From assembly GCF_902459465.1 (NCBI RefSeq), contig NC_047064.1, positions 14,942,001-15,006,000 on the forward strand: a DNA stretch of 64,000 nucleotides, written 5' to 3'. This document shows, in pieces, positions 13,371 to 40,400 of the stretch. This DNA is from Asterias rubens. Taxonomy: Eukaryota. The notes beneath the pieces are model-generated. The model saw only the letters and a program-made list of their open reading frames with translations, had not been told where the DNA came from and ran no database searches. A program made the position numbers and the translations under genes. How positions within the stretch are numbered: position 1 is the stretch's first letter; the number at the start of each line of letters is the position of its first letter.

Positions 13371-13409
13371 GACTACAGAGATTGTACATCATGTATAGCT
13401 TTGTAGGTC
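13371..13409 (+). promoter_or_regulatory. Collagen 5' stem-loop around the start codon (LARP6-type translational element)
   Basis: CTACAGAG (13373-80) pairs with CTTTGTAG (13399-406). Inside lies ATTGTA-CAT-C-ATG-TATAG, giving the same 6-nt and 5-nt bulge spacing as the human COL1A1 element as I recall it. Confidence 0.75.
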
Positions 13410-13475
13410 TATCCACCCGTTACAGGCGGTTACTCCTGGTCATAGCTGTTCTGTTCACCATAGCCGAGGCCCAAT
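13391..13475 (+). CDS. Exon 1: signal peptide [28 protein letters not shown]
   Basis: ATG at 13391, hydrophobic core and AEA|Q cleavage-like site. Phase-1 donor T|GTAAG at 13476 matches the phase of the VWC exon. It lies within the collagen 5' stem-loop. Confidence 0.9.
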
Positions 13476-16400
13476 GTAAGTCAATTTTATTTTCTATTTT
13501 TTTCCCCCCCAAGTATAAAGTTTCCAAAGAAGTTGTGTTTTTTTTTTTGTATTCTTGATTCAATCTCATGCATGATGGTAAAGTCAACAAGCTTACTTGT
13601 GTGTTTGGAAACAAAAAAACTTTGAGCACAAACAAAACAAAATGTTTATGAAATTTTTTTATCCTGTGTTTTTCACAAAGTTTTTTTAAAATTTTATTGC
13701 ATGCTTTTAAGAATTACTTACAATCTGAATGATGTTTTATCTCAAAGCACTTTTGAAATGCTCTGCATGCCTGCCTCTCTCCCACATACCCCCTAACGAT
13801 CCTTGCCAAAATCGCTAAAAAATATTGTGGTTTATTACTTGATTAAAAATTATTTACGGACCCAAAAAAAAATTCAATTGTGAATGGGTATTTATCATCT
13901 GTAATCGTATATTCTTTTGTACAGTGGGAGAACTTGTGTGGACAAGTTCATTTGTTTTTTAAATAGTCTTTTGTTGTTGTTCTATCATTGGGCTGTACTC
14001 TTCGAAGTTCCAGTTTGAGAAAAATTCCTTCATTGAACAGACCAGTTGAAACAAAAGTCTACTCATCGCAAAGCAAATTATTGTACATATTTCCAGTTCC
14101 AACTGTTTGGTGATACTTTGTTTGAAAAAACATGTTGTTTTATCTATGAATACTTCCATGTCAAGAATTTTGGTTTTGCCGTAAGCGGCTTCTACCGATT
14201 GCAAACCAAACGCAGAATATGTTTTCCATAAATCAAGTCTTCAAAATGATAGAACGTCTGGTGGATATGAGTAACTTTAAGTTGTTGTTGATTGTACCCT
14301 GTTGTCCGTTGTTCTACTAGCTCCAAGGTAGTCCATCATTTATAGCCTCAGTGTGTTAGACTCTGGGAGTGATCAGATAGCAGTGGTTTGAAGTTGGTGA
14401 AAGCAAATCACACGTTGACTCGAGCGATGACATGTAAGGGACACTTGATCAGGAAATGATCATTTAAAGACTAAATCTTGATTCAGGACAGAGCTAATGG
14501 TTCCAAAACAAACACACTTCAAAACTGATAGAAGATCGTTTCCACTATTTTGAATTCTCTGATTGGATTAGATTGTAGCCTTTGTACAAAAGATCGTTGT
14601 AAGAATTGTCTTGAAAAAAATTTGGACTGATAAAAATCCGTTTATTTTATTTCTAATTGGTGAAACTGAAAGGAATCACTTGCTGGTGGTTGAGTTTCAC
14701 ATTTTGCAAACTTGCCTAAAGTTGATCTTGTCTGTTGTAAGAGAAAAACCGTTCAGAGAACAATGCAGATACTTATAAAGATTGTGTTCTATTTCTATCC
14801 ATTTAAGTATTCCATGTTTTACCAGACATATCCCCTCCCCTGAAAACTAACCCTTGTGTGACCATAGCGGTCACAAGCTTGTACTGAAATGCCCTCAGTG
14901 GAAGAAAACAAAAATTATTGGACTGATTCAACCTTTTTTTCCAATGTTTCCCATATTAAGAAAATTAAAATCATTTGGTTCCTGAATAATTTTCACGACA
15001 CTTTTCCTGAAAATAACAGGGCAAAAAATCAACAAGATTAACAATGCCAGGGCGTATGGTGATGATTAAATACATAAATTAATGGTCTTGACAGGACTAC
15101 CTTTTTCTTTCCAGTCTGCTAAAAGCAATTAAACATTTTAAAAGAAACTCCCTAATGAAAAACACTTGCTACATTTACAATTTGTTCAACACCAATTGGA
15201 ACACACTTTGCCAAGTATTGTCTTGTCTCGCCCCTGTTTAATATTCATGAAAGAGAGGGAGGAGTCAAGTTTTTGATTGACATTTGGTTTTTGTGCTTTG
15301 TAAGAAATAACTGCTGGCTCAGCAACTTGGATCAAAAGGCTTTAAAGTTATGTTTCTCTGCAAGCTCAATGAAAAGTTCCTTTGTTCAAATTTCTTTCTT
15401 TTTTACTAGGATTCATATGTAGTGATCTTGTTATTAGTTGTCGTCTTTGTTGAAGATTGTCATGAAGTTGTTGGAAGAGTTTCTATGTGACTTATTTTGT
15501 GTTTTCTTGAGATGTTTATTTGCTGGGTGGGGGTAGGTAGTTTCAACGGAAGGAAAATATTACCAAACCCAGTTTTATGTTGTTGAAGATTGTCTTGAAG
15601 TTGTTGGTAGAGTTACTACCTGTTTTGTGTTTTCTTTGCATGTTTGTTTGCTAGGGGTGGGTGGCTGTGTTGAAGATGGTTTCAGCACATGGACAATTTT
15701 ACAAAAACCTAGATTGTTTTGGGGAACTTTTCAAAGTTGTGTGAGAATATCACTCGGTAAAGGCAGTGTGCCAAGTCTACCCAATTTGAACAGCTAAATC
15801 AGCAACTTTTTGTGAGATTCTTGAATGACCCTGAAGGATCTGGCAGATGCTGAGGTACCCTCTGACCTGACAAGGCTGATATTAGTTCCACTTGCTCTGG
15901 GATCAACCAAAAAGCTAATAACTCCCCTCCAAGATTGATTAGAGCAATTTAAACTTATGTTCCCCCCTAAGGATTGCCCTGCTCTCGTTTTTTGTTGTCT
16001 TTCTTTTGGTGAGCATGTAAGTTTAACAAGGCTTGATCGGGTTTCCAAATGACAAACCGAGCAACCCTGAAATTTGGGCCCCAAAGAAGTCTCCAATTGA
16101 ACTCATTTCTTTGATAACAGTCATGGGACAAATATTTTGAATTATACCCTCCTCTTTTGTCAAGGCTACTGGTATTTCACATCATCTTGAAATATCATCA
16201 AAATGCAGGGAAAACAAAGTAACTTGAAAGATCATTTTTCAAAACTGTTTCCTCGGGGGGACACAAAGACCCAGCGGCCAGCCTGTCAGATTAGTTGAGC
16301 AGGCATAATGGCAAACAGCCATAAAACTTGGGGGAAAGAGTTAACAGAATTGACTTGTGACCTCGGTGAAGCTGGTTTGGGCCAATCAGAAGTTGCCTCG

Positions 16401-19400: not shown

Positions 19401-22400
19401 GGAATCTTGTTTGTGTGAGGATGTGAGTGAGGTTTTGTGTTTTTTAAACAGTTTTATGAACAGTACAGAAAACAATTTATCCACAACTAAAACTTCAATA
19501 GAATAAGTAAAGGTTGATGTAAACTTAAGAAAACAATAAAAGTATGAGACATGACTTTTGCTGACGTTGGGTTTTGACATAAAAACTAAACACAGACCCA
19601 GGTACTCAACCCAGGTGTAGTGCATTTGTTTTTTTTTGTATTTGAAACCTTCGAACATAAGTACATAAACATGTAAAATTGTCCTGGTCAAGACCAAAGT
19701 AAAAAAAAAAAAAAAAAAAGTTTGATGACAAGGAAAGTGGACCCGGAAATGAAAACTTTGAATTTGTGGAATACTAAATGATTAAAGAATATTTAGTTTT
19801 GGTCATGTCACCTTGAAATCTTTTGAAGTTACAACTTGGATTTATACCCATCCATCCATTGATTTAACACGGGAAAAAAATCCCATGATATCGTTGGTGG
19901 GCCTTAAAAATGAGAGGCGGTTTGCTGCGGAAAGTTTAAAAATGTTTGATCGTTCACCCTTGCCAAATAAAATTTAATATTGGCATTGATTGAGTTTAAA
20001 ACACCGATTCAAAACGACTATTGAAAATTGTGATGATTTTGAAACTGGATAGTTCGCGTGCCACATTTTGGTTCCAGTGTTGCCAGGAGCTGAGGAAGAT
20101 GCCTCGTCGTCGTCAACGTCGTACTCAAGCTCGACATACTATGAGAATCATCTTCCGTGTTTTCACTTGAACGAGCTCTACATGCACGGATCTGAGTGGA
20201 AGTATAATGATTGCACAACGTGCTTTTGCGATAATTCCACAACTAGATGTGACATGGAGAGTTGTCCGCGATTACCATGCTCTGAACCTATCAAGCTTGA
20301 GGGTGAATGCTGCCGAAAATGCCCTTTCTGTAAGTAAGCTTTTGAATCAAAGGGGAAATTAATTTACTTCTTGGTGGTTTTATTTAAGAAAAATAAAGAT
20401 TAAATTCTTTTAAATTTAAGGGCCTTTTTAGTTAAAAATTGCATTCTCAAATTACTAAGGAAGTAGTGTTTTTTTAATAACCTATAAACTGTATAACCTT
20501 ATAACCTAAATTTTGTTCAATCAAATGATGCCCATAAGAAATTCCAATGACATTGAAATGGCATTAATCATTTCCGGCCCCTATTTCTTGCTAGATGTAA
20601 TGACAACTGCAGTATGTTTGAATACTTTTGTGAAATCAAATTATGCCGAAAAAGGAAGTCCGACAAAAATGAAAAAGCCACTAATAACTTCCCGCCCTTT
20701 TTTCTTGCTAGATGCAATAATAACTCAACTGTCGCCCTCATTGACGGGGGCCTCAGGATCTGTAGCAGAAGGAGAGGAAAACAGAGTCCAACTTGATCTC
20801 GGCATAAATTTTGTCGATTCACAAGATACCACATCAATAAATGGTAAAAAACTCTGGCAGTTAAGTGTCTGGACCAGTCGAGATAAAAGGGGCGAAGCTG
20901 CGAAGGTTGGTTTTGTTGAGCAAGCCTTCTCGACGGCCCAAGAAAACACACCCTTGCTAAAGAGGAGTCCATTTCGCTTTCGCTATATAAATTACCCGAT
21001 GGACTTGACGGGTGAGAGATGTTCAGATGTTAAGTTCATTTGTGTGAGATTGGCACAGGGGGAGAAGCCAAACCCTGATTTTTTCTTCAGTGCTGAGCCG
21101 GATGATGAAGTGTTGAAGGAGTGTATTGAAGCACCTGCCTGTCATGGTAAGTGTGTACTGTAAAAAAAGTTGTCCGTTTGTCATTTAAAAAAAGTCAAAA
21201 GCAACTATTTGAAGTTTTCTTCATTGTATATTTTGTATGCGGTGACACCATGTGTATAGCTGCTTGCTGGGTAGATTATGTTCTTTTGAGAACTGTCTTG
21301 CTATTTATTCTAATGCTGCAGAATAGATTTCTTTTTGGAATTTGAGAGATTTCTTGGTTCCAAATAGAACTGGTTTAAGTAGATAATGCAAAATGCCGTG
21401 AGCCCTGAACCAAATAAACAATGATATCCTGACCATGAAAAAACTTAAATCCCACAGTTTTCTTCATGTTTTTGATGTTTTCTTCATATCTTCTAAAATG
21501 ATCTGAATAAGAAATGATAATAATGCATTTTTACCTCAATATTTCTGTGGAGGGTGCTGCTGCAACTTACGCCTACAACAATATTTTCTAACTCTTTTGA
21601 TTTCAGGTGTTGTCATAAGGGGTCTGACATGGAGCTACAAAGCAATGACTGTAATTGCTGGTCAGGCAAACCCACTCTTCATCAATGCAGTGGCTCACTT
21701 CACCTCCACCAGTAGTAGTGTGTCCGGGAACAGACTATGGCGTCTTGGTATTTTCGGATCCAAGAATGAAGAGGGGACCGGGGAACGGTTCAACTACGTC
21801 CGACAGACACTGCCAGCAGCAGATGCCAATATGCCGTTGGTGGACGGAAACGATATCAAGTATGCCGATGCTATGGCAGAGTTTGATATCGCAGCAATTG
21901 GCTGCAATGGATTCAATTATGCGTGTATGGAGCTGACGAAAGGGGACAAGCCATCCCCCGATTTCACACATTCGGTTTTGGATGACGAGGACGGTGACAA
22001 TATTCTGACGCTTTGTGAAATGGCGACATGCAGAGCTGGTAAATATAACTTACAAATTGAAATAGTTTCCTGAAATCTTTTTCTAAAACTTTGCCTCAAC
22101 TAGAAATACAACAACTGAAAAGTTAAATAGCTTTCTGCAAATGTTTTCAAAACTTTGCCTTATCTAGAAATACAACAACTAAAAAACTTCTACTATAAAC
22201 AATCAAAAGAAAATAGAGAAAGACTATTCATGTAAATTGACAAGTTTCTTATTCTTGTTTTTGCCCAGTATCGCACATTTTAGATATTGACACTGAGCTT
22301 AAGTATGGGTCGATCCTTGATAGTCGTCCTATCAACCCCTTCAGCATCACCATGGAGATCGATGGTGGAAATGTTGGAGCGGCAGGCGAGGACCTCTGGA

Positions 22401-25400
22401 GAGTCAGTGCCTTCGGCAGCGAATCGCCCGACGGGCTCGGGGAAAAGTTTAACGTCCAGTCCCAAGTCCTGAACGAGGAGCAGCAGGACATAACGTTGGA
22501 ACTTCTTCGACCGATGGATCTCGGTCCCGTCAATTTCAATTTTGACATGACCGATCTGACTTGCAAACAGGTCAAATACATGTGCTTGTCGTTCAGCAAG
22601 CTGGACGAGGCCACCACAGTGTTTTCGTTGCATCCTGTCCCAGACGAAAGCGTTCTCACACAGTGTGAACCGACTCATTGCGAGGGTAGGTAACAAAGTA
22701 GCATTTCAGTAACCTTCTTTAAAAATTGTAAATTAACAACATCAAGTGTGCACTTTTTATCTCTGTTCTGATTGAAACGGCTTTTTATTTGCAGTTTGTA
22801 TGTAAGTGTTTAATGTAAAAAAGGATTTTAAAATCACTTGATGAAGGTATGGTGGTCCCATATCTCTGAATTGAAAATTTGTGCATAGATTGCAAATTTT
22901 TATCTAGAATATGCATTTTATTTAGTTTGTGTTTTAAACATTCAAGTTTTTATATGAGTTTCTTAGAAATGTGAATTTAAGATTGTGATGGTCTTTCTTT
23001 TTCTTGTTACTTTCTTCTTCTGTAGCTGTTTATGCTCGTCAGTTAGCCTGGGACTACGAGTCCGAGGAGATCACTCTAGGAATGAAAACTCCACTCGTGT
23101 TGAGTAGCACAGTCCACTTCACACCAACGGGTGAGAATGTCACAGGCACGGACCTGTGGAAACTCACACTCTTCGGAGGGAAAAACAAACGGGGGACAGG
23201 GGACAGATTTACTCCCACCGAACAGCTCCTCGATGCCTCCCAATCTGCTACACCCTATTATTCGGGGTCAACCCTACAATTCGACGGCATCTCGACCAGG
23301 TTTGAACTGGGGGCGTTGGGATGTGCCGAGTATGACTTCTTCTGTATGGAGTTCTCACAGGCTGAGAATTCTCAACCTGAGTTTCATTTGCTGTACGAGA
23401 CGAACACGACATCTTTAGTTCATTGCAAGAGAATGGAATGCTCATCAGGTGAGTGCTTTAATGGCTTCAATATTGGTGTACTTAGTCGTTTTTGATTGAG
23501 GAAATCAGCCGGTAAATAAACACAGGAAGAGGATGCTTGACTTACTGTCGCCAATTGTTACGAGCCTTAATTAAAATCAAACTTCAAGAGAATAACAAGT
23601 TTTTCAGACACAGTTTTTAGAAAACACTAGGAAACGACGTCATTACTTATTCAAACCAAGGTTATAAAATTGAAAGGGTGTGGTTAAATTAGCATTGATA
23701 AGCCTTTGGAAGACTCTGCTTGGGTCGAAACGTCAAGCCATTGTCTATCTTTAGCCTGAAAATAATATATGCGGACATGTCTCTAACCTTTTAGTTTGAA
23801 TTGCCTCTATTCTAGATTCTAATTTCGCAAATGAAACTATTTTTCGATCGAGCAGGTTTCAGAAATTTGATAAAAGGTCTTTAAAATATGTTTCTTTGGA
23901 TTCGTCTTGCAGTGTTGTCAGCGGAAAACTTCCAAGCCCAACTCGTGAAGGGCTCCATTGTCGATGGCCGCCGCAGCAACAGGCTACAGCTCAGAGCCTC
24001 AGTTGACAGTACCGATTCTGGCATTGAGGGCGACGATCTCTGGAAGATGAAGGCTTACGGCAGCACAAACTCTGATGGGAGTGGGGTGAGGTACAACGAG
24101 TTGGACCAGGTGCTGACCAATCTTCAGCAAGACACGGGCGTGGCAGCTCATGATACCCTGAACTTTGTTCCTATCGGTCTGAATTTTGATATGGAGGAAC
24201 TCGGCTGCAGCGAGGTGAAGTACATCTGCCTGGAGTTGCAAAGGGACCCCAGCTCATCTGTGATTTTCTCTCTGGAGTCTGAAGGCGGGCTAACGAGGTG
24301 CATGGAGTTGAGATGCGAAGGTGAGTTGTTTCATCAAAACCAGAAATTTAGTTTATTTCAATCGGAAATTCCTAAGCATTCAAGGAGCATGCAGTTGTGG
24401 TTAATTAAATGTAAATCTTAAAAAGTTTGAAAAATGCTCACTCTTAATGAACAAATAAATCAATTGTGGTTCATCTTCTTTTTGTATTTGAACTAAATCT
24501 AAACAATCGTAGGGTATTTTCTTTTCTTACATTTACAATTTTTAAACCCTGAAGAAAGGCACTCTAAAACTTTGAATTGGTGGGCAAAAGAAGATGTACA
24601 AAAATGTCCACATTATATTTATTGAGAAAATAGAATGAGCTGTTGCAAACTGTTTATCAACAAAAAGCACCTGTGGTATAAACGCAAATAATTGGTATGG
24701 CCTGATGGTTCAACCCTAGCAGAATCTGTCTCGAAAATATATTTATTTAAACATGTTTTTGTTTTGTCATTTAGGTGTTTATGCTAAGAGTGTTACCTGG
24801 GACTATCAACCAGGGAGTATTACCCTAGGCCAAGACAGTCCTCTGGTAGTCAACGCAATGGTAGAAATGGCCAACATGGGTAGCCCGATCTCCGGATCCA
24901 GCCTCTGGCAACTCGGCCTATTTGGCAGCAAGTCCCCAACAGGCGAAGGTCGACGCTTCAACGCCAAGAGACAGATTCTGAGTCGGAGTCAGGAAAGATT
25001 GGATTACGCCAAACTGGGCACCACGCTAGATTTCAGCAATACGGGCACCATCTTTGATATCGGAGCAATCGGCTGTACAGAGTATACCCACATCTGTGTT
25101 GAGTTTGAGCAGTCTCAGACGCCGAGGCCCGACTTTTATTTCTTCACCGAGGATGGCTCCTCATCTCTGGTTCAATGTCAAGAGAGATCCTGCAACTCAA
25201 GTAAGATTTAGGAACATCTGTTCTCTTTCCTCCTAGAAAATAATTGTTATCAAATTTTGTTGGTATTATCAAAGGTATTGAAAAGTGTGTATTTTTAGAA
25301 AAAGGACTTGGTCTAGTCTTTGATTTTGAAATGGTAAATCAAAGGACTAGGTCTAGTCTTTGATTTTAAAGAATCAATTACTTTCAGTGATCACACAAGA

Positions 25401-28400
25401 CATAAACTACATAGCAAGACACTAATATCTTTCCAATCGTAACTGTTTTCTTTTGCAGATGTTGCTGTGAAGCCTTTAACCACCAACTTGCGAAGAGGGT
25501 CGATCGTTGATAATCGTCCGATAAACCCGATACGGTTGGATCCAATGATAAGCAGTGTCGATCTGGGTGTGGCTGGAACAGACCTGTGGCAGCTATCGGC
25601 CTATGGAAGTAATAACGACGATGGAGCAGGCACTCGCTACGCTGAGCAATCTCAAATCCTCAACCAGAGACAAACCAATAAGATGCTTCCCCCCGATGGG
25701 GACGAACTTGATTTTGGGCCCATCGACATGAACTTTGACATGACAGGACTTGGCTGTGCTGATGTTAGATTTATCTGCACAACATTGAGTCGAGATCCGA
25801 GGGCGAGTGTTGAGTTTACGCTAGAGCCCCAGCCAGATCAGTCTGCACTGACCAGCTGTCAGCCCTTAGTCTGTGAAGGTAAGCCACATCATTTTGTAAT
25901 AATTTTGTTGTTGTAAAAAAATATGATTTCTTTTGTAATCATGTAGAGTCTTTGTGAGATGGATGTGAAGTTTTATAAGTGAAAGGTATTCTGATCAGTG
26001 CTCTACAATTTCTCCTCTAGGTATTTATGCTGAAAAGCTTGAGTGGACACTTGATACCGCAGAGGTTGTCCTGGGTCAAAAGAGTCCGGTCATCATCCAT
26101 GCAAACGTGACAATGGCCGACTTGGGATCAGACATATCTGGCCAGAAACTTTGGAAGGCCAGTCTCTTTGGCAGTAAAGACCCAAACGGTGAGGGTGATC
26201 GATTCAGCGAGAGTGAACAGATCCTAAACCAAGAAGGTATCAGTCAATCTGCCCAACGAGGATTAACGATGGTCCTTCCGGACAGTTCCACTCTGTTTAA
26301 TGTTGGAGCCATTGGGTGCACTAACTGGAGATACGCCTGTTTAGAATTTGGACAGATCAACAGCCCAAAGCCTCCATTCCACTTTTTCACAGTCGGTGGT
26401 GAGCCAACACTGATCAAATGCCAAGAAAGACCCTGCTCTTCAGGTAAGATAATTTGTAGATTAATTTTTAAGGAGATATTCATTGTTTTCAAACACTAAT
26501 ATGGGACAATTTGACAAATTATTAACATTTGGTTCTTCTTCATCTTCTGCCAGGAATAGATGTTCTTTAGTCACTGACTCAATCTTTGGTTATTAAATTA
26601 ATTTGTGCAGTTTTTTTTTCGTAGTCTTCAAGCGCTACCACTACCTTTTTAGTGTTATCTATCAGACTTACATGGCTATTCTTATTCTGTTCATTTTCCC
26701 TTTAGCTCTAAAACTTAATCCACTGCAAACCTCTATTACATCTGGCTCCGTTGTTGATGGCAGACCGCAAAATCGAATTCAAATGCAAGTGTCAACAGAT
26801 GGTAGTGATGTTGGTGTCGACGGAAACCGTCTGTGGGAACTAGCAGCCTTTGGTAGCAGCAACCCTGATGGATCGGGGACAAAGTACCTTGAGAAACGCC
26901 AGGTTCTTACCCCAGCTCAGGGCGACACTCCTTTGAATCCTGGAGAGCTCCTGGATTTCGAAGTTGTGGACTTTGATCTTGACATGAGAGACAACGGATG
27001 CGGGGAGGTTCAGTATGTATGTGTGGAACTCAGGAAAAATCCGAGAGCATCTGTGGACTTTGTCATCGAGCCTGTACCTGATGAAAGTGCTCTGACAAGT
27101 TGTCAGCCAGTCAAATGTGATGGTAAGTACACTCAACTCTAGCTATAAAGAAGTTCTGCGTGTAAAGAATACTCTTATCTCATTTCTGCTTTTGTGGTTT
27201 TGTGTTTTGTGTTCTCAGGGGAACAAAAGCTCTGGACTCAAATTCATAAAGACTCTTAGCACAAAAAAATCCTTAGCACAAGAAAAATTTCCTTGGCAAA
27301 AATGTTTACCATCCAGAATACAGTTACCATTATAGTCTTTTATACTCGAGTCTTTTCTTGCTTAACTAAGAATTTTTTTGAAGCAGAATATTCAGCTGAA
27401 CAGCTTGATGAAAGTTGGAAGTAGCGATGCTGACATATTACAGCTTGGTCAGTTGATTTTTCTGGCATACTTCATAATACTCATACCCATGTTGTTTGTT
27501 TTGTAGGAGTGTTCTTCAAGTCACTTGAATGGTTGTATGAACATGACACCATCATGCTTGGTGAGGAGACGGACATGACCGTCTTTGCCATCGTTGAGAG
27601 CAAAGAAGCCACCAGAGATGTTGAGGGGGAGGGTCTCTGGCAGTTGAATCTCTTTGCAAGTCGCAGTGACGACGGCGTCGGTGAACGTAACCGCTTACAG
27701 AGACGTATTCTCAAAGAACCAACAGCTAGCCAGCCTCTTGCCGGTGGGACCCCCCTGAATCTCCTCGATGTCAAGGCATCGTTTGATTTGGGTGCGATAG
27801 GATGCGGTGACTATGGGTATCTCTGCCTGGAGTTTGAGAGGGGCCAACGTCCAGAACCAACATTTTACATGTTCACTGAGGCTGGGACAGAAACACTTGT
27901 CAGCTGCAAGCAACGAACATGCCAATCAGGTGAATAAAAAAATTAATTAACATAATTCTTTAAAATACTCCTTTTTTCAGGAGACATCCACATTAGTTTG
28001 AGAATTTATGAACCCCCAAAACTTGCATATCACGGTTTCTCAATTGAATTATACTTATTAGAAATCTTTCTTCTTTCTGAACAGCCATTGGTATATCAGG
28101 CATGGAGTCATCACCTATCTCGGGAGATGTTGTCGAGGGTAGACCAGTAAATCCGTTGATTTTCAACCTCTCGGCCATCCCCGCTCCAGACACATCAGGC
28201 CTCAGTGGCACAAACCTTTGGCAAGTGAGCGTCTTTGGCAGCGACAGCCCAATCGGCGAGGGCCCAGAACTGAATCCCCAGCAGCAAGTTCTCACTGGGG
28301 ATCAGCTTGATTTGGACCTGGAACCAGGAAGCCCCATTGATTTCGGAGCTGTAGGCGTCAGCTATAACATGTTAGGCATTGACTGCGCTTCAATGGGTTA

Positions 28401-31400
28401 TATCTGCGCTAGACTCAGTAAGAACCCTGCTGCGAGTATTGACTACACATTGGAAGGGTCACCAGATGAGAGCGTGTTGGTGGATTGTCAACCAGTGGAT
28501 TGTAGAGGTAAGAAGCTTGAACACAAAGTTCTTATAATTATGTTCAGTTCTTTATGACTTCTGTTTGGAGAGCTTATTTCAACCTGTTAATTGTTATGAA
28601 GCTGTTGCCCAAAAAAATATGCTCTCATAATTGTACCTTTGTTTCTGAAGCAATTGAGCAATTCCATTTGTGTTCCACTCACAGGTGTTTTGGCCGAGGC
28701 AATGAGCTGGGAGTACACTGAAAGAAACACTGTGATCAACCAACCCAGTCCGTTGACAATTGACGCCATTATCTTCACAAACGATAGCCGGCAGTTGTCT
28801 GGTTCTGATCTGTGGCGCTTGGGTCTTTACGGGAGTAGAAACAATAACGGCACAGGCCCACGTCTCAACTACACTGAGCAGATACTGAACGCAAGAGCAG
28901 CTTCAACATCTCTACCCAGCGGGTACCCGTTGTCTCTACGGAGTGTGCAGACTGAGTTTGATATCGGTTCACTTGGATGCTCAGAATTCACCCACATTTG
29001 TGCAGAGTTCACCCAGGGGGAGAATCCATCCCCAGAATTCAAGTTTGAAATTTCTCGGGGAAGGGACGTTATAACTGAATGCATTGAAGTGGAATGTGCC
29101 GCAGGTAAGAACAGACAAAATCCATTCAGTTTGAAATCAAATCTTTGGATAGAATCCATGAATTACCCCTATCAAATTGAGCTTTCAGTAACTCTTTTTT
29201 TTTGTATTCACTCCTACAGATGTCATATTGTCTGGGCTTTCTGCTACAATGTCCGACAACAACGTTGTTGAAGGTTCCGGTAACCTGTTCAGACTTCTTG
29301 TCCGAGCCACGCCTGCCCAAGACTCAAAAGGTGTTGCTGGTACCGGATTGTGGCAGCTTGATTCATATGTCACCCCTGATCCGACATCAGATATCAAGCT
29401 GGCGCCACAGACTCAGATCCTATTAAAACCACAACAAGATCTTATCCTCAGACAAAGATCAATCCTAGACTTTGGGAGCGTCGATTACAAACACGATTTG
29501 ACATCAGTACAGTGCAATGAGATGGGCTATCTATGTGTTGAACTCAGCAAAGGACCCTCACCGAGTGCTACGTTTGATCTGCTAACCGTACCTGAGGGAA
29601 GCATCTTAAAAGCTTGCAATCATTTGGAGTGTAAAGGTGTGAGGGCTAACAGTATTGACTGGTCCTACGAAGCAACCAACGTGGTTCCTGGCGAACAGAC
29701 TCCATTCTCTATTCAAGCCAGTGTCTCAATGGCTGATGGCACGCGGGAACTAAGCGGAGACGGCTTATGGAGGCTTGGTCTCTTCGGAAGTCGGAGTCCA
29801 GATGGGATCGGAGAGAGGCACGACTTCGTTCATCAAACCCTCAACGACGATAAAGCAAGTCAAATGATCGAGTCTGGTAAAAATCTTGGCTTGGCTGACA
29901 TCAATACACAGTTTGATGCTGGTGCTCTGGGATGCACTGACTTCAAGTACGTATGTGTAGAGTTTGCAAAAGGTGACAATGCAGAGCCCGATTTCAGCTT
30001 CACAGTTGCAAATAAAAGAAGTGAATATGCAGAGGAGAAGATAGTTTCCTGCAAACCAGCTCCTTGTGAAGCAAGTAAGTTCTACTTCATTTATTTTATC
30101 AAAAAAAAAGACAAATTTCATACATGTACCCTCTTATAAGCATGATATTATTAAACTAGAAATAGAAGTATTAAATGTAATATTTTATGGGTTTGCTCTT
30201 TCTTTCTCTCTCTCAAAAGGAGCTGAGTTTATCAACTTGAATGCAAATCTCATGGACACCAATCCAATCCTAGAGGATCATCGAGACAATGAGGTCTCCC
30301 TTTCCACTGTAGCTCTAGCTGGTCTCGACAGCAGCTCAGTCATGGGAGAGAACCTCTGGAAACTCAAATCTTACCTCTCCCCTAACCAAGACGGTAGAGG
30401 CAGGAAGTACGCAGCCACCGAGCAAATCTTATCCCCTACCCAGCAGAATGACCCGCTGAAGCCGGCTGGCTCTCTGATCTGGGATGACATGAGCGTGCCG
30501 CTTGACATGTCCGACTTAACTTGTTCCAAGACGCCGTATCTTTGCGTGACTCTGGAGAAGAACACGGACCCTTCAATGGAATTTACAATGCATGGAGTTC
30601 CAAATAATGGTATACTGACTGATTGCGTCGACATCACAAGTAGATGTGAAGGTATGCTGTTCAATTCCATCCATCTTTAATAAAACGTTTAAATAATTAT
30701 ACACTATTGAGAAGAATCCTGCTGTTTACGATAAACGACAACAAAATTGTTACTTTTTATCTTGCACAATTTTTTTTTCTTCTTTTGGACTTGAATAGAG
30801 TATACAAAATATTTATTGCAAGATAATAAAGTGGCTCATATTGCTTCATTCTTTCTGAAAGTTTGAAGGGTTCACTGCACTTCAGCCAACCTCATTAATG
30901 CATTGCACACAACAAGCTCCCACATCATTGTCCAATTAACCATGATGTCATCATTGTTTTTCCTAACACCAGGGGTGGTTGCCACGGGCATTGAATGGAG
31001 CCATGAAGCCAACAACTTCATGGCTGGACAGCCAGCTACTTTGAGCCTCAATGTCGCCATCCCAACCACAGAGGAGAGTCGTGACGTTGACGGCCTGGGG
31101 CTGTGGCGACTTGGCCTCTTTGGCAGTAGACAGGCGGATGGAGGGGGCCAACGATTGGGAAATGTCGACCAGATTTTGAACTCTTACCACCAGGCAAACG
31201 GCCTCAGCGGTGGGAACCCCCTGCAGCTCAGAGATATAACAACTCGATTTGATCTAAGTCAGATTGGGTGCACCGACTATCAATATCTGTGTGTGGAGTT
31301 TGACAAGGGGCAATCGGCTCAACCTGATTTTGCTTATAGAGTGTCGACGGGGGAGAACACGCTGGTTTCCTGCAAGCCACAACCATGTCGAGGTACTTTA

Positions 31401-34400
31401 ATTTTGTTGTTAATCAAGTACATATTATTCTTGTTAACCTTTTTAAATTGTTGGACATTTTTGGTTTGAGTTGATATACTTGGGGACACTTTGAAAGAAA
31501 AACCAAACAAAACAAAACAATAAAGTGACATTCAGGTGAGAGTTGTGGTAACACCTTGTGTAAATCTCTTTTTAGTAGGATTAAACCAACACTCATTCAG
31601 AAATCATTTTCTCAATCTTCATTCATTTCACACCATATTAATATGTTGTTAGCCAAGGTGTCACAAGCAAAGAGTTTGTTTCACTAAAGACTTGACATTC
31701 TGATTTTACTTTTTTTTTGCACAGGTGTTTATCTCACTGGTTTGGTTAGCCAGCCGGGCGTAATGGAACTCCGAGAAGGGAGTACAACAAATGAAATTGA
31801 GTTCTCCTCGGTGGCATCGAGCTCTCCTCTTGGTGGCGGAGTGGAAGGCCTCAATCTCTGGCGGTTGGCTGTCTATGGAAGCAGCCGGCCGGGAGGTAAT
31901 GGCCCCCGATACGGCTTCCAATCCCAAGCCCTGTCAGGTTATCAGAGCAGTATTCCTCTCCGGCACGCAGGAGATAGTCTGGACTTCCGCACCGTCCGAA
32001 CCAACTTGGACATGAGAGGAGTCAGGTGTTCTGATGTGAGACACATCTGTACAGTGCTTAGTAAAGACCCAATGTCGGTGCCACCGTTTCAGTTGATGGC
32101 GATTCCAAGTGAAGAAGTGTTGAAGAGTTGTTTTCCTGTACCAAGACGTGCATGCACAGGTTAGTCCCGAACACTTCTCAGTTTTAATCGTTGAACAATT
32201 ATAAGTGGCTATTGTTCATATATATTGAACAACTGAAGGAAGCTACTCTTCATAAGTTGGAATTAATCTGTGGTAATTTGTGTCGGATTTCAAGTTTTAG
32301 CAAATTCCTCTCTCTTTGTTTTCCTCAGGTCTGGTGTTAAGCAATCTTGATTGGAACATTGACAATGGAAAACTTCTCAACGACCAAGGGAATGATTTTG
32401 ATCTGGATGTCCGAGTGGACTCCCTCCCAGGTGGTGCCCAAGTCACTGGGAGCCGCCTCTGGCGAGTGGGCACCTTCGGAAGTAAAAACGGCGATGGGAC
32501 TGGAGACAGATTAGGCTACCGAGGGCAGATCCTAGATCGGCAGACAGCCTCTACTTCTCTCACCCCAGGCTCCTTCTTGGAAATGGACAACATTCCCACA
32601 TCATTTGATTTCTCTAGGCTCGGCTGCGGGTTAGAGTATCAGTTCTTTTGTGTGGAATTCGCAAAAGGCTACAAGGCTGAACCGGACTTCAGCTTAAAAG
32701 TAGAGAGCGGCAGAGGGAACAGTCTAATCAAATGCAGGGAGGTTGAATGCAAGAAACGTAAGTTTGTGAATTGCTGTTAAAATATTTTTTGTTTAACTTC
32801 CTCCATATTTATAAGATATTGATATTGAAAATAAACCACTTCTTTTCTTCAGTATCTGTTATTATTATAGTATTACTTTTTATCTTGCAGCTGTGGAAAT
32901 TGCACAAGTTAGAGCAGACATTGTAGGAACCAATCCAGCTTTGGTGGAGGGATCCACTTTCAATAGAGTGATGTTCACTTTCGAAGCAACCACAACCCCT
33001 GACAGTGGCTCTGTGTCTGGCGAGAGACTATGGGACTTGTCAATCTTTGGAAGTCAAAACCCTGTTGGTGATGGTGTCAAACATGCCCTTAAATACTCCT
33101 ACAATTTCAATAGATATCAAGAGGCTAAGACGGCCACAGGAGGCGGTGTAATAAATTACGGTTTTGTTGACACCAATTTTGATATGACTGGCTTAGTGTG
33201 TAATGACATCAACTTTATTTGTGCGACACTAAGAAAACATGACAGTCCCTCGCCAGATTTTGAGCTCGTACCGGTACCCGATAATCGTGTCCTGACAGAC
33301 TGCTTTAGAATCAAGTGTGATGGTAAGAAGAATTGACTGAAATTGTTCAATTATTTTTCATTTGAAATACACTAAAATTACCGCTGATTTCACAAGTCTG
33401 TACACAGCAAAGCCTGTTGACATTATCCCCTAGTTGGATTATCAAATGTAAACTAGATCTCAATCGAGTGAACTTAATCAACATATAAATATATTGAATT
33501 CACAACTTCTGTAAAAAGTGTTAAACTTAAATAAATAAATTGTTTTTTCCTTTTTTTTCCTGCAGGTGTGATTGTAGATGGTACTCGGTTAGAGCTGTCA
33601 TCACAAAGTGAAGAGCTTGACCCTGGCGTGAATGAGATGGATTTCTCTGTTTCTGTTGTATCGAGTAACAATGGTGCAGAAGTCGAAGGCAATGACTTGT
33701 GGAGGCTGGAAGTGTTCACGGCTAAAGACAGGGATGGCATTAAGGACAAAACCGTCCTGCAAACTCAGTCTCTGACCCCCAACTTGGCGAGTAGAAATCT
33801 TCGCGCCGGGTCACAGCTGATGTTCACCAATCTTGCGGCGGAGGTGGATCGCAATCTTGTCAACTGCCAAGGGAAAACGTACATTTGTGTTAATTTATAC
33901 CGTGGGGACAGACCCTCTGTTGATTTCAGACTCGAGGGTTCCTCAGACGGGGCTCTCACGAACTGCAAAGAAGTTAGCTGCGCCAAAAAACGTTAGTTAG
34001 TGGAAAAGAGCTACTTTCGAAGAATCTCAGAATATATCTGACACTTTTCCTTCGACTGTTTTTTGTTTACTGTTCTTCTTTCAAAAAGGAAGGTCTTGAC
34101 TGTTCAAATTTACTTCTTTTCTCTGATAATGGATGAAAGAATGTGGTGTAGTGTACAGTGGAATTTTTATGTTTTTTTTTGTGTGCATGGTGTTTAAAGT
34201 GAGATACAAAAGGATTCTTCATGTTGTGTGAGTTACTGCAAGGTTTGTCTGAGGTTTACTTTTCTGCTTTCTGTTTTCTTGTCATTTGTTTGTTGGTCAT
34301 ATCATCTGTATGTCAAATCATTAACCCTCGTTGAGCAATATATCATCACAGCCAACAACACCACTCTACCAAAGAAGTGTCAATTCCCTCAAAAATTACG

Positions 34401-37400
34401 AAGCCAGAGTCTTGGTTAGCATTCTGTTTGACCCTTTTGGATATGTTTTCCCTCCAATATTAACTAGTTCTTTCTATTTTCTTTTTGTTCTCTCCTTCTT
34501 GTGTTGTTACCTGATCGCCTGGATCCTTCTGCCAACAGCTGCCAATAAAATTGTAAGCAATCACTTTCCCTTCTTTTATTGATTTAGCTCTGATACATTT
34601 TAGTGTTTTCCCCATAACTGTCAATATTCTATGCAAACAAGCATTTCTTCACTTCTATAAAATGTTGACTTTTAAAACTGATTTCTTTAACACTCTGACA
34701 ATGATGTTTAGTACATTCTGTTTAGTCGTGGTCTTATCGAAATCATGAATTTTTGATACTACTTTCAAATCCTATTATTTATCGGGATTTTTGTTTTGTT
34801 GTGGCAGTTTGGCGCCAAGGGTGACCGAGGACCAAAAGGAGAGCCTGGAGAGGCCTTCGGAGGCGGTGGCAGCGGGGTGAGTATTTGAGAAGGAGATAAT
34901 TTTTGGAGTAAATCGTTTTTATAAACTGTGTCCAGAATGTTGTTAAAGACTTGTAAAACGATAACCATGTTTTTAAAATAATTTGTTAATGTGTCTTTTC
35001 TTCTCACCTTCATTTACAGTTTGTACCAAGAGCTGGGCCACCAGGAAACCCAGGACCCCCAGGACCATCTGTAAGTATTTATGAGTTTGCATTTTTTGTT
35101 AAAGTATTTTTAATCATTCTTGTTCTGCTTCTTTATTTTTCACATCATTATTGTGTTTGTTTTGTAATCAACTTTGTTTCCCCCCCCCGTGTTTCTCCTT
35201 CTCCATGATAGGGATCTCGTGGTGAGATTGGTGATTCAGGACCATCCGGACCCTATGGACAGAAGGTGAGAATATAAAAATTACAAAAACCTTTTGATTG
35301 GTTTAGAGCACGCCACATGATATGTCTTAGTTTTACTGAAAAGCCGCAGGAGTGTGACATGCCATATCTGAATCAAACAGTTTACTATACCCTTGGCAAC
35401 CAATACATTATACCGATAGCTACTAGTGTACTATATCAATAGCAAATGGTGTATATTTATAGAACACTCCTAGGATCACCTCGTTGTTTTAACCATAGCA
35501 CTGAAAGCATTCAATATTTGTATACTGTCATATTGCCGACCTCTCTATCAATTCAACCTTGTAAAAAATATTTCTTGTTCATCTAAAAAAAAAATCATGT
35601 TTTTCATCCTTTCAGGGAAATGCTGGATCTCGTGGATTGAATGGACTTCCCGGTCAACCTGGACGCGCTGGACCACCAGGACCCCCAGGAACCGTATGTA
35701 CTATTATACATATCCAGTAGTGAATGTTGCAAACTAAACCATTTTTGTTGCTGCTCTCTAAGTTTTGTCTTGAAGTTATACAAAAACGATATCTCATCAG
35801 AAAAGAAATGGTGCATGCACTGAATCCGTTTCAACTGAGAAAGCTGCATTTCCTTTACTTTGATTGTTCTGATTTTATCTGCTTTATGAAGTTTATATAA
35901 AGATGCATTCTGTATAGTGAAAAGTTGATGATGTTATATGAATCATCATATTTTTCACACACACAAAATAATTGTTGGCTTGTTTTTATTTTTGGCGATA
36001 AAAAACACATGATGGTTTTCAACACAAAAGACTGCATGCTTTTTTGTATAATGCCTTTTATTTTAAAGTTTAATTTATGTTCAATTGTTTTTTTTTTTTT
36101 AATCCTTCCCTCCCCATCACAGATTGCCCAGAGTGCCAACATTGGACAACAATCTTACAAGGGAGTCCTCCCAGGAGCCTACCAGTACCCACAAGCCTCC
36201 GTTCAAGTAAGTTCTGGTTATTTCAAAAATCTTCCTTCTTGGAACATTTTTTCGCTCTCCTTGCCCCTCCCCCAACCACATACCTTTGTTAGCAAAAGCA
36301 AAAGCAATGTTCATATTTAAGACTTTCTTCTCTCTGGAACTCCTCTCTGGAAGGAAAACAGTTACAGGCATGTGATTTCTCAGGATTTTTGTTCCTGTTA
36401 TCAAAGTTCTTAAAGCCATGAGCCTTCAAGTTTTCTAAAGAAATCGCTTAAAGCCATTATACACTTTCGGAACAGAAAAAAAAAGTTCACAGATTTACAA
36501 ATTATTTACAGGGTTTACAGAAGGTAATGGTAAAAGACTTCTCTTGAAATATTATTCCATGAAATGCTTTACTTTTATTAAAACAATTATCAATTCTCGA
36601 CATCGAGAATTACTGATTTATAGTAAACACATGTCATGACACAGCGAAACAGGCAGAAACAAGGGTGGGTTTTCCCGTTATTTTCTCCCGACTCCGATGA
36701 CCGATTGAGCCTAAATTTTCACAGGTTTGTTATTTTATATGTAAGTTGTGATACACGAAGTGTGGGCCTTGGACAATACTGTTTACCGAAAGTGTCCACT
36801 GGCTTTAAGAAAGAGGTTCACATTGTATGTAAACCTGTAGTTTTGTACTTCTGTTGATGCATACTTTCTGTTAATTTCCAACATGTTAATATCCCCGCAT
36901 GATATTCTTCCTACTAATGTCTTGTTACCACATTACTACAAAGTAAAATGATTCTCAAAATGCTTTATACTATCGAAAGCTGCTATACTTCTTACCAAGT
37001 AATATTTTATTGCCATTAATGAAAAGTGATTACCAAACAAGTCCCTTCGTTTGTATTCATTTTTTAATATATTGCTGTTTTGACGTTTTTGTTTACAGGG
37101 ACCCCCAGGACCACGTGGTCTTCCAGGTAGCGCAGGAAACCGAGTAAGTTGATGTTAAAACAAATCATAAGGTTTTTAATTCTCGATTCAATAACTATCA
37201 TTTTGTGTGTTGATGATATGTGTTTGGGAAAACATTTGTTGACCATGATTTTTTTAATTTGCATTCTAGGGAGCACAAGGTTTGATGGGACCTGCTGGAC
37301 CTACTGGTGAGCCCGGACCCTCTGTAAGTTGACTCCCCAAGTTGATTATATTTTGAGCAAGTCTCTAGTGTATCTTAAATAAAATACAACTTGATGGAAG

Positions 37401-40400
37401 ACTCTATCTTCTCTCTTAAGAAAACCAAACTTGTTTTCAAATTGGATCCGAACGGAATTCTTGGAAATAAAAACCTCTGTTGCTTGGACATATTGAACAA
37501 GACTTCTCAACTCATTTCTGTCTGGCATCTTTTCCATTAAATTTCTTCTCCGTTCTAGTATCTTTCCTGTGAGTTCTATCAACAAGTCAATAAGCCTTTT
37601 TGAGGTATGGCGGACAAGATACGCGCATGTAACACGCCGCGACTGATGCCACGCTCACCATGTTGGTGGTCATTAGGTTTACGTGAAAACGCCGCGTCGC
37701 CTAAAATGGGCACTTCACTGAATAACATATGTTCTATTTCTATGGTCAATATGCACAAATTTACCACAACTTTACAGTGTTGTAGCATTGTGTCTGCCAT
37801 ACCTCAAAAAGGCTTATGAAAGCGATTGAAGCTTTACTTTAATGGTGAATTAACAATTAGATGCATCAGCTTTGGATCAAAGACCTGTTTTTTTTATTGG
37901 GATTTTGTTTTGTTTTTCTTTTCTAGGGACCATCTGGACCCGCTGGACCCCCAGGACCTCAGGGACGTGGTGGTGATGATGTAAGTGTTTGTTTCAAATA
38001 GAAATAAGTTTTAATCGTTTCCTATTGTAAATGATAATGCTGGAAGAATTAAGACCCTCTACTCCATAAACCAGCAGGCATTTTGATCAGAGGAAATTGA
38101 ACAGAGGAACTATTTGATGACTTAAAAAATGTGCTCATTTATTTGAGTTAGATATAAAAAACCGTACTTAAAGAGGAACATAAAACTAAAGCATTATGGC
38201 TGAACAAACCGCATATAAGTGATTATTAATAAAGTATACTTGGGGATTTGATAGGGTGACGATGGCAAAGATGGAGCCCAAGGACCCTCTGGACCACCAG
38301 GAAGCACTGGACCAAGAGGTACCCCAGGCAGACCAGGATCAAGTGGCATGAAGGGACATGCTGGATTCCCAGGACTTCCAGGAATGAAGGGAGAGACAGG
38401 AAACAAGGGAGACCGTGGATCTGATGGTGCAACTGGCCCCTCTGGTGCCCCTGGTCTTCCAGGAGCCCAAGGTTCACAGGGAGAGAGAGGACGTAATGGA
38501 GCCCAAGGAGAGGCTGGCCCAGCTGGTTCTGATGGTTCCCCAGGATCCCAAGGACCTTCTGGCCCACCAGGACCATCCGGTGCCCCAGGAATGCCAGGAC
38601 CATCAGGAGCAAAGGGAGATGCTGGTTCCCAGGGAGGACGTGGACCACAGGGTCTTCAGGGTGTACGTGGTGAGCGTGGATCAGATGGTTCTTCAGGAGC
38701 CCCAGGAGCACCCGGTGCAGCAGGACGTGATGGCAGCGTTGGATCCAAGGGAGCAACTGGTGCCCCAGGACCCATGGGCGCACCCGGATTCCAAGGAGCT
38801 ACTGGAGCCCCAGGACTTCCAGGAGCAGTTGGAGCATCTGGAGCTAAGGGAGACCAAGGAGCACCTGGACCAAGTGGTGAGCGTGGAGAGAATGGACCAC
38901 CAGGACCCACCGGTGAGAGTGGACCACAAGGAAGCCCAGGAGAGTCTGGACAAGATGGAGCCAGAGTAAGAACTCATCACATTTGTTTTTCATGTATTGC
39001 CCCTGAATTTGATTATCTTTAGTGTTAGGTATATTGCTAAACTTCATTTGTGAAAATTCTTATCAAGCCTCTGGTGCATCTTTGGAAGCCATGAAAGGCC
39101 AATAATTATAAACATTCTTGTATTTTGATCAGTAGTTTCCCGCCCTCGAAATTGCACACAAACTTGTCATTCTTAAACTAGCGTCTAAGTTATCACAATC
39201 ATTGTTCTTTCCAGCAAAAAGATTTATTAATTTGAGCATCCAATTTACCTTGTAGGACCCTTGTAAAATTTGAGTTTTGAAAGTATCATTTTTGAATCTT
39301 TGTAAAATCAGAGTATTGTTAGTTTTAAATGATTGTTTTTCTTTTCCTCAGGGTTCCCGTGGATCCCCTGGACCAACTGGACCAATTGGTGCCCCTGGCG
39401 AGCGTGTAAGTAACTTTTAATCCATCACCCAAGTCTAAACAAGTTAAGGGTTTAACTAAGAGTATATGACTGGAGCTGGACTTAAATCTGTGATCCCCGG
39501 ACTAACTTGCTGGCGCTGTACAAATTGAGCTATCTAGCCCCAAGGTTGGCAGTCTGTTTGGGGTACCATTCAAAAACCATTTAATCTTTAACTGCTATGT
39601 AGCCGGGGATCAATCCCAAGTTTAAGATAAAACCTGGGAAGCAATGAGGTGTGTGTATGTGTTTGTTTGGTTTTGTTTCTGTTCTGGAATTTACATTTGC
39701 TTGTCTTCATTTTTTCCAGGGATCAATCGGACCAATTGGAGCCCCAGGACCTGCTGGACCACAGGGAGCTAAGGTAGGTCTTGTTTATAACATGAGTAAT
39801 TTGAAATTGTTTAAATTTTATATTCCTAAAGATCTTGTAAATATGTAATAAATAATAAATGATATGAATATTTATAATGCGCCGGTATCCATCACACAAG
39901 ATGCTCATGGCGCAAACTGGAAAATTAATAGAAAGAGAAAAGTATAGTAAATACAAAGCTACTACAAGAACCAAAAGAAGAAGATTTGCTGAGTAACCCA
40001 ACTTAGAAACGTTAACGGTGTTGAAATCATGAAGTAAATGGTGCAGATTCTAAAATAATTCTTTATTTTGTATTGTTTAGGGAAACACTGGAGAGCGTGG
40101 AGCCAGAGGAGAGCAAGGACAGAAGGGATCCGAGGTAAGTCCAGAATGAACAAAAAGTCTTGAAAAATGTAAAGAGTAAGAAAGATAATAACTCATGGAG
40201 TATCATTGCCGGGTGTTCTATGCACCCGACTCCAGCTCTGGGATTTCAGAGAGGGTTTTCTTTTTTCAGAGCTCTGGGTTTCCAGCAAGATGTGGATTTG
40301 AGTCCCGGTTGTAACACTTAACCTAACACTTAATGCTTCATCCTTTGGATTGGACATAAAGCTGTTGGTTCTGTTGGTCCCGTGTGTTGTGTAATGCACG

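Follow-up and report, generated by a model that had tools for sequence, protein, structure and literature searches.

A 20-module SURF array in a fibrillar procollagen gene of Asterias rubens, most probably the COLP1alpha orthologue

A 64,000 nt stretch of the Asterias rubens genome (contig NC_047064.1, positions 14,942,001 to 15,006,000; hereafter the window) carries 20 tandem SURF modules on the + strand, between 20712 and 33991. Their number and their regular order raise the questions of which gene they belong to, whether they are transcribed, and whether the alternation of two module types has any meaning. The best overall explanation, with a probability of about 0.8, is that an A-clade fibrillar procollagen gene, most probably the COLP1alpha orthologue, carries them as an optional N-propeptide cassette.

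Organisation of the SURF Array

A scan of the window for an LW anchor and four Cys at about +56, +63, +90 and +95 found exactly 20 cases on the + strand. Splice sites define 19 SURF exons, each of phase 1-1 and of a length divisible by 3, with a true acceptor at 20712 and a true donor at 33991. When spliced, they give 8,496 nt (2,831 full codons) without a stop and with 80 Cys, i.e., 20 four-Cys modules (M01 to M20) of 136–146 aa. A preliminary description made from the sequence alone had reported 20 four-Cys modules of 134–146 aa and 2,827 aa in total, a trivial difference. Four module queries gave no Pfam profile match for the SURF module above noise.

The modules belong to class A, class B or a third, cap class (support values below are from the module trees). 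M01 (20712..21146), class A, groups as an orthologue with the position-1 modules of other chains (clade 100/96). M02 (21607..22038) is a class B module of position 2 and the sister of S. purpuratus 2alpha module 2 (100/98), while M03 (22269..22685) is a class A module of position 3, in a clade with 2alpha module 3 (99/77). An expanded block begins with M04 (23026..23448), a class B module of the position-2/4 type, and M05 (23913..24320), a class A module of the position-3 type (clade 99/92). It continues with M06 (24775..25200; B), M07 (25459..25878; A), M08 (26021..26443; B), M09 (26706..27122; A), M10 (27507..27929; B), M11 (28085..28507; A) and M12 (28685..29104; B). M13 (class A) and M14 (class B) share one 855 nt exon (29220..30074) with no intron between them. 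The remaining modules match single positions of other chains: M15 (30220..30651), class A, position 5 (clade 97/90); M16 (30973..31392), class B, position 6 (93/81); M17 (31725..32159), class A, position 7 (98/86); M18 (32329..32757), class B, position 8 (100/81); M19 (32891..33322), class A, position 9 (SH-aLRT 97 for the position-9 clade); and M20 (33566..33991), the cap, which is neither A nor B (100/99).

A Fibrillar Procollagen Gene around the Array

The exons of a fibrillar procollagen lie on both sides of the array, on the same strand. The coding part of exon 1 (13391..13476) encodes a signal peptide, was read directly and ends at a phase-1 GTAAGT donor; its N-terminus is similar to those of other SURF collagens (MYSFV...). 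A VWC exon of 252 nt, phase 1-1, follows at 20078..20329 (Pfam VWC PF00093, E 2.6e-12). The first exon past the cassette is a 14 nt micro-exon (..ANKI..) at 34539..34552, which passes from phase 1 to 0, and minor triple-helix exons with Gly-X-Y frames occur at 34808-34876, 35020-35070, 35212-35265 and 35616-35693. An open Gly-X-Y frame of 765 nt with one unusually long major-helix exon is found at 38255..39019 (Pfam Collagen 2.4e-41) and shows 46–52% identity to other SURF collagens. Colinear tblastn matches place further major-helix exons, as a block, at 42992..53920, and C-propeptide (COLFI) exons at 55612..58689, with Pfam COLFI in three exons (E about 1e-12). A tblastn search with S. purpuratus alpha-2 collagen matched the SURF modules of the window at up to 48% identity (E 1e-50). 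No second collagen gene was found in the window flanks.

The window thus holds signal-peptide, VWC, SURF, minor-helix, major-helix and COLFI exons in one gene. Its four-Cys modules, VWC, minor helix, major helix, COLFI domain and module homology are those of a SURF-bearing A-clade fibrillar procollagen. That the array is a collagen N-propeptide, as first proposed, is supported by these exons and by transcripts that join M20 to the minor helix.

Module Classes and Alternation

The proposed division of the modules by parity was recovered in an ML tree of the 20 modules, where one branch parts all odd from all even modules (UFboot 80, SH-aLRT 83); none of 500 label shuffles was as clustered as the odd/even split (0/500). 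Mean identity in the 20-module alignment is 31.9% for A-A comparisons, 34.8% for B-B comparisons without M20, and 24.5% for A-B comparisons. The alignment also displays the motifs attributed to each class, which are Trp at module position 8, LWxLGLFGS, FDxGAxGC and CxEF in even modules 2–18, and FDMT-like and CxxLxK motifs in odd modules. M20 is about equally far from both classes (25.7% and 24.4% identity). In a tree of 94 modules, B modules form one clade (100/99), and the last modules, including M20, form a third class (100/99). M20 is thus no B module that has degraded, but belongs to a conserved cap class of its own. The preliminary description had treated it as a divergent cap; M20 does stand apart, but as a member of an ancient, conserved class it is not peculiar to this array.

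Typed with HMMs, the RefSeq alpha-2 collagen of S. purpuratus has the order A-B-A-B-A-B-A-B-A-cap, and so do other chains, one of them from Asterias rubens; alternation extends to chains of L. pictus, Acanthaster, Patiria and Apostichopus. Of the two features presented as new, therefore, only the module count of 20 stands; alternation is common to other chains, being already present in S. purpuratus alpha-2 and in starfish chains. The B clade spans echinoids and asteroids and was also found in a holothuroid, an ophiuroid and Diadema. Related modules also occur in hemichordates. Conserved residues specific to B are Trp8 and the Gly before Cys1, and those specific to A are Asn21, Pro124 and the Gly after Cys4; they are retained in 30 B and 39 A modules from at least two echinoderm classes.

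Other chains contain a separate orthologue for each of positions 1, 2, 3, 5, 6, 7, 8 and 9 and for the cap. By the module trees, the window array consists of an ancestral ten-module scaffold (A1-B2-A3-B4-A5-B6-A7-B8-A9-cap), which S. purpuratus alpha-2 and starfish chains share, and of five added pairs of the position-3 A plus position-2/4 B type in the M03–M14 region. The expansion of one A-B pair to nine, proposed earlier, is not upheld, as the positions have their own orthologues and only five pairs are extra. Growth by two modules at a time is retained from that proposal. Mantel-type tests for covariation of the A and B distance matrices did not separate the A-B register (r 0.14, p 0.24) from the B-A register (r 0.005, p 0.49; controls similar).

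AF2 models of two module pairs were all-beta with pLDDT values of 91.7 (M13–M14) and 94.8, and the SURF module is predicted to be a beta-sandwich of roughly 140 residues. The pTM was 0.70 for an A-B pair (M13–M14 of the window) and 0.80 for a B-A pair (S. purpuratus alpha-2 B2-A3), which come from different proteins and so represent an uncontrolled comparison; the two kinds of junction are predicted about equally well. The suggestion that the A-B pair is the functional unit thus finds no support, B-A being predicted at least as confidently. A Foldseek search of PDB and AlphaFold/Swiss-Prot with a two-module model returned only generic tandem beta-sandwich matches (TM <0.45), and for that reason a specific structural relative cannot be named.

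The alternation might be only a historical by-product of two-at-a-time duplication, with no structural or functional meaning. The extra modules of the window gene would fit this, as would the Acanthaster paralogues of 7, 9 and 11 modules, which differ by A-B pairs, and the lack of a register signal in the distance matrices. Departures from the A/B order point the same way: an Amphiura protein has four consecutive B modules, and chains of L. pictus and Diadema contain B-B neighbours, so that alternation need not be strict. A mere by-product is, however, hard to reconcile with the maintenance of class-specific residues across echinoderm classes, with ten positions that keep separate orthologues, and with the defined geometry predicted for both junction types. 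We regard it as unlikely, though it deserves to be taken seriously.

Transcription and Splicing

Contigs assembled from RNA (runs X1, X2, X6 and X17) contain all eight of the GT..AG joints predicted between exons 11 and 20 (8/8), and one contig of 6,849 nt covers exons 11–20. The joints include 28507|28685 (M11 to M12), 29104|29220 (M12 to M13) and 33322|33566 (M19 to M20), with further joints at M15, M16, M17, M18 and M19, and the contigs cross the fused M13–M14 exon without a joint. Their loose ends are the end of exon 10 on one side (the 3′ end of M10, before 28082) and, after 33991, the micro-exon and the start of the first minor-helix exon, so that M20 is linked to minor-helix exons in RNA. 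Exons 10–20, spliced as predicted into the minor helix, are present in four RNA-derived assemblies carrying two organism labels. Word depth for the SURF contigs in run X6 is about 500.

The reading phases show that the whole VWC+SURF cassette can be left out without loss of frame: the last letter of exon 1 is T and the micro-exon, 21,062 nt away, starts with CT, restoring a TCT codon. This escaped the preliminary description, as did an earlier review's account of SURF exons concealed within the 1alpha gene (PMC2852846). The micro-exon is the likely acceptor for exon 1 in a putative short isoform. The only hint of such an isoform comes from run X20, which has 0.86 of the words of a helix exon compared with 0.12 of those of a SURF exon.

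Could it be that the cassette is seldom included and of marginal biological importance, and that the gene in reality makes a short chain without it? The word fractions of run X20 lean in this direction, and in S. purpuratus 1alpha the cassette is absent from all embryonic cDNAs and the long band is faint (PMC2852846). An annotated long protein was also not found: no representative among the 150 best of 281 matches (representatives only) was more than 50% identical to M13–M14, and a C-propeptide search (5-residue seeds) of sea-urchin relatives of 1,605–5,100 aa, a range that leaves out a short chain of ~1,400 aa, returned none but 2alpha-like chains. Against this stand the spliced, cassette-containing contigs of four runs and their depth in X6. 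In addition, an open frame of 2,831 codons over 19 exons has kept every Cys and the class signatures, which argues for purifying selection on the cassette. A marginal role for the cassette is accordingly improbable.

Identity of the Chain

In S. purpuratus COLP1alpha, the first intron of the short form, about 22.8 kb, holds one VWC exon and many SURF exons in frame; the long form has "potentially 16 SURF modules", and only four ESTs together with a faint band of 11 kb spoke for it (Exposito et al. 2010, PMC2852846). Since the in-frame-skippable VWC+SURF cassette of the window matches this published gene, the window gene is probably a COLP1alpha (1alpha chain) orthologue, an assignment reached by gene structure and elimination.

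An orthologue of 2alpha or 5alpha that gained modules would share the architecture (VWC, SURF array, minor helix) and the ten-position scaffold seen in the window, both of which are found in 2alpha/5alpha-type chains. However, the modules of S. purpuratus alpha-2 and its L. pictus relative pair tightly at every position and those of the window fall outside. Best module identities between the window and S. purpuratus alpha-2 are 38–48%, and the C-propeptide exons are 36–55% identical, compared with 74% between S. purpuratus alpha-2 and the L. pictus relative. In-frame skipping of the whole cassette has, moreover, been published for COLP1alpha only. Taken together, this makes a 2alpha or 5alpha identity quite improbable. 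Fibrosurfin was rejected, as the window array is spliced to collagen exons and its modules lie outside the fibrosurfin-like clade.

Proposed Role of the Cassette

As an optional N-propeptide of the probable 1alpha chain, the cassette would provide the long isoform with an arm in which 20 modules, like beads on a rod, extend from the N-end of its triple helix. The four Cys of each module are presumably disulfide-bonded, and the modules would be joined without a linker. Alternation may have been kept because only two-module duplications preserve both heterotypic junctions, A to B and B to A; it would also keep neighbouring modules dissimilar (24% identity), possibly reducing misfolding between adjacent domains. 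The least supported step draws on the 2alpha and 5alpha N-propeptides: by analogy with these, the arm would lie at the surfaces of fibrils or between them and influence how fibrils grow or cohere.

Any link between the SURF arm and mutable collagenous tissue is speculation. That the major collagen chain of the adult, and not merely the minor 5alpha, carries a 20-module arm, and that such arms zip reversibly in mutable tissue, is a very doubtful proposition. If it were true, each (1alpha)2-2alpha molecule would show up to three SURF rods, and the two-module A/B period would let the arms of neighbouring fibrils zip reversibly, giving the tissue its variable cohesion.

Echinoderm-specific candidates for what keeps collagen fibrils together in tissues that change stiffness within seconds are few, and SURF propeptides are one of them. 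To our knowledge they have hardly been studied since 2004, and they are absent from a 2023 review of echinoderm matrix. The present analysis shows that the probable major chain has a hidden propeptide which is transcribed (exons 10–20) and which is twice as long as those known. The grammar of the arrays (A, B and cap; ten conserved positions; pairwise growth) can aid the annotation of badly predicted echinoderm genes, and modules that have no curated domain family now have a confident beta-sandwich prediction. Current views are not overturned, but direct tests of the long isoform and of both types of junction become possible.

Comparison with Known Systems

The closest counterpart is the putative long isoform of COLP1alpha, which has a skippable VWC+SURF interval of about 22.8 kb, the interval here being 21.06 kb. 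It differs in its 16 potential modules, against 20 in the window gene, where contigs cover exons 10–20 and the link to the minor helix. S. purpuratus alpha-2 (2alpha; RefSeq isoform X1, P0179) has the same MYSFV... start, VWC, alternation, cap, minor helix and COLFI, and its modules are orthologous to those of the window at positions 1, 2, 3, 5, 6, 7, 8, 9 and the cap. Isoform X1 carries 10 modules, not 20, and lacks the amplified block of position-3 and position-2/4 modules.

The 5alpha chain of sea urchins also bears a SURF N-propeptide, with 11 modules reported against 20 here; this propeptide is reported to stay on the fibril surface (Cluzel et al. 2004, as cited in PMC10817530). A possible relative of 5alpha is the L. 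pictus chain P0177 (ABBABABA-cap). Fibrosurfin and fibrosurfin-like proteins (S. purpuratus XP_030840939 and XP_030840116) likewise have tandem SURF modules, 13 of which were detected, but unlike the window gene they have EGF-like domains and no collagen helix, and their modules, which are all A-like, fall into a clade apart that has neither B modules nor a cap.

Transglutaminase C-terminal barrels, integrin alpha legs and RbmA, which are Ig-like/FN3-like rods, resemble the SURF array as predicted here in consisting of serial beta-sandwich modules. At the low TM values noted above and 8–13% identity, this is a generic likeness of fold and no evidence of homology.

Exon structure of the SURF array

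The + strand between 20.7 and 34.0 kb holds exactly 20 copies of an LW anchor followed by four cysteines (at about +56, +63, +90 and +95). The 19 SURF exons are bounded by phase-1 polypyrimidine/AG acceptors and GT donors, and all have lengths divisible by three. Once spliced they provide 8,496 nt with 2,831 full codons, 80 cysteines and no stops, and encode modules of 136–146 residues (M01 to M20, from the N-terminus). The anchors, the cysteine count and the single open frame bear out the 20 four-cysteine SURF modules of the preliminary description, and its limits for the array, 20712 and 33991, are those of the first acceptor and last donor.

Only one site in the array carries two modules in a single exon (29220–30074, + strand, 855 nt), where M13 and M14 are joined without an intron. 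This looks like an intron loss at the junction of an odd (class A) and an even (class B) module. The M01 acceptor and first codons are present twice, at 20595 and again about 117 nt downstream at 20712 (...cctatttcttgctag/ATGTAATG and ...cttttttcttgctag/ATGCAATA), and the encoded 11-residue peptides are alike; either a small duplication in tandem or alternative use of two acceptors may explain this.

Gene layout and transcription

Upstream of the array lie exon 1 (13391–13476), which encodes 28 residues and ends in phase 1, and a VWC exon of 252 nt (20078–20329). A 14 nt micro-exon (34539–34552, phase 1 to 0) separates the SURF exons from the minor helix, the four exons of which lie 3′ of it, and three exons that match COLFI reach as far as 58689. 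In fibrillar collagen genes, helix exons are usually 45–108 nt. The major helix includes a 765 nt Gly-X-Y open frame (38255–39019) holding one long exon, with further helix exons 3′ of it, and another of about 460 nt (52521–52982) holding one very long uninterrupted exon, suggesting intron losses in this part of the gene.

Logan contigs from four RNA sequencing runs (X1, X2, X6 and X17) were aligned to positions 28000–33999. The eight predicted GT..AG joints of exons 11–20 were found at the exact predicted borders in all four runs, and no splice joint was seen within the fused exon 29220–30074, which the contigs cross uninterrupted. A 6,849 nt contig from a related organism (about 98% identical) spans the same exons and about 2.5 kb more on the 5′ side. 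Contig letters unaligned before 28082 match the end of exon 10, and those unaligned after 33991 match the micro-exon and then the opening letters of the minor-helix exon that follows it (34808), so the SURF array and the collagen part are on one RNA, and a long SURF-bearing transcript exists. A repeated element, skipped as such in the alignment, lies in the M16–M17 intron (31492–31578); depth there rises abruptly in X2 and X17, and on either side of it contigs run out into unrelated sequence.

Every exon of the 8.7 kb VWC and SURF cassette is phase 1-1 and exon 1 joins the micro-exon in frame, so the cassette can be skipped as a whole. The micro-exon is likely the acceptor for exon 1 in a short isoform, of which the word content of a further run, X20, gives a weak hint (0.86 of helix-exon words versus 0.12 of those of a SURF exon).

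Module classes in the window gene and its relatives

In a tree of the 20 modules, a single branch parts all odd from all even modules (UFboot/SH-aLRT 80/83), a split by parity that had been set beforehand as a check, and the clustering was matched in none of 500 label shuffles. Odd modules are on average 31.9% identical to one another and even modules, M20 excluded, 34.8%, against 24.5% for comparisons of odd with even; M20 is equidistant from the two classes. The class motifs described previously are all visible in the module alignment. The alternation is real, and far beyond chance.

Searched with the M13–M14 pair, a set of 1.84 billion representative proteins yielded 281 with SURF modules, the named ones coming from all five echinoderm classes and three hemichordates. 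Typed with profiles for classes A and B, the alpha-2 collagen of S. purpuratus and an Asterias rubens chain both read A-B-A-B-A-B-A-B-A-?, three Acanthaster chains AABABAA, AABABABAA and AABABABABAA, and an L. pictus chain ABBABABA?, while every module of the fibrosurfin-like and hemichordate proteins is A-like. A 94-module maximum-likelihood tree contains one B clade (30 modules, 100/99), one clade of last modules, the cap class, including M20 (n = 7, 100/99), and A modules as a grade. With wider taxon sampling the B clade gains holothuroid, ophiuroid and Diadema modules (SH-aLRT 79); crinoid and hemichordate modules are absent from it. Conserved residues are Trp at position 8 and the Gly preceding Cys1 in class B, Asn21, Pro124 and the Gly following Cys4 in class A, and seven invariant residues peculiar to the cap. 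Alternation is therefore a property of the family and not of the window gene alone. The array and the outline of its interpretation were described correctly, but its novelty was overstated, as the A/B/cap pattern is visible in chains already public; as far as could be checked, this grammar is unstated in the accessible literature.

SURF-type modules of the hemichordates Glandiceps, Ptychodera and Saccoglossus (search matches P0005, P0009, P0012, P0013, P0019 and P0022) are A-like with no B class, and one such protein begins MYSFVD..., as a collagen does; the module is therefore ambulacrarian, extending beyond sea urchins and echinoderms. The longest array seen, 31 tandem SURF-like modules, occurs in a 5,459 aa protein of the crinoid Anneissia japonica (P0001, XP_033114395) that has neither a collagen helix nor A/B alternation. 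Four consecutive B-class modules occur in a protein of Amphiura filiformis (P0006, XP_072019390), which shows that certain proteins tolerate two B modules side by side.

Origin of the 20 modules

Each module was traced to the first tree clade containing other chains. M01, M02 and M03 group with positions 1, 2 and 3 of the ten-module chains, and M15 to M20 with positions 5, 6, 7, 8, 9 and the cap, respectively. The position-3 clade (98/90) takes M05, M07, M09, M11 and M13, and the position-2/4 B clade (98/90) the even modules M04–M14. The gene is therefore an ancestral decamer with five extra pairs, and these placements support growth by two-module units. The Acanthaster paralogues differ by module pairs and support the same mode of growth. 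The proposal of an A-B pair as the duplicating unit holds for the two-module step; the register of that step may be either A-B or B-A.

Predicted structure

AlphaFold2, with input alignments of about 30 homologous module pairs, predicted two all-beta sandwiches without a linker both for M13–M14 (pLDDT 91.7, pTM 0.70) and for modules B2 and A3 of the S. purpuratus alpha-2 chain (pLDDT 94.8, pTM 0.80). Both kinds of junction look defined in these models, and A-B is not favoured (pTM 0.70 for A-B versus 0.80 for B-A, the pairs coming from two proteins). Fold searches with the predicted structure returned only generic tandem beta-sandwich matches, and a Pfam scan with four module queries gave no match.

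The data establish how the exons are arranged, that a long transcript exists, the three module classes, the ten conserved positions and the pairwise expansion. The N-end of the chain would carry its 20 sandwich modules as a rod, in which alternation may have been retained for its two heterotypic junctions and the low similarity of neighbours. Judging from the 2alpha and 5alpha propeptides (PMC10817530), this arm would lie at the fibril surface; a part in mutable collagenous tissue is speculative.

Relation to known procollagen chains

The window gene adds a long chain to the SURF-procollagens already known. This chain is not 2alpha: module identity to the RefSeq S. purpuratus alpha-2 collagen reaches at best 38–48%, and its C-propeptide exons are 36–55% identical to that chain. 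The S. purpuratus chain and its L. pictus relative share 74% identity. Gene structure and elimination point to a 1alpha orthologue, with a probability of about 0.75. It probably corresponds to the long isoform of 1alpha proposed in 2010, to which transcripts now lend support; that isoform was given 16 modules, and the window gene has 20.
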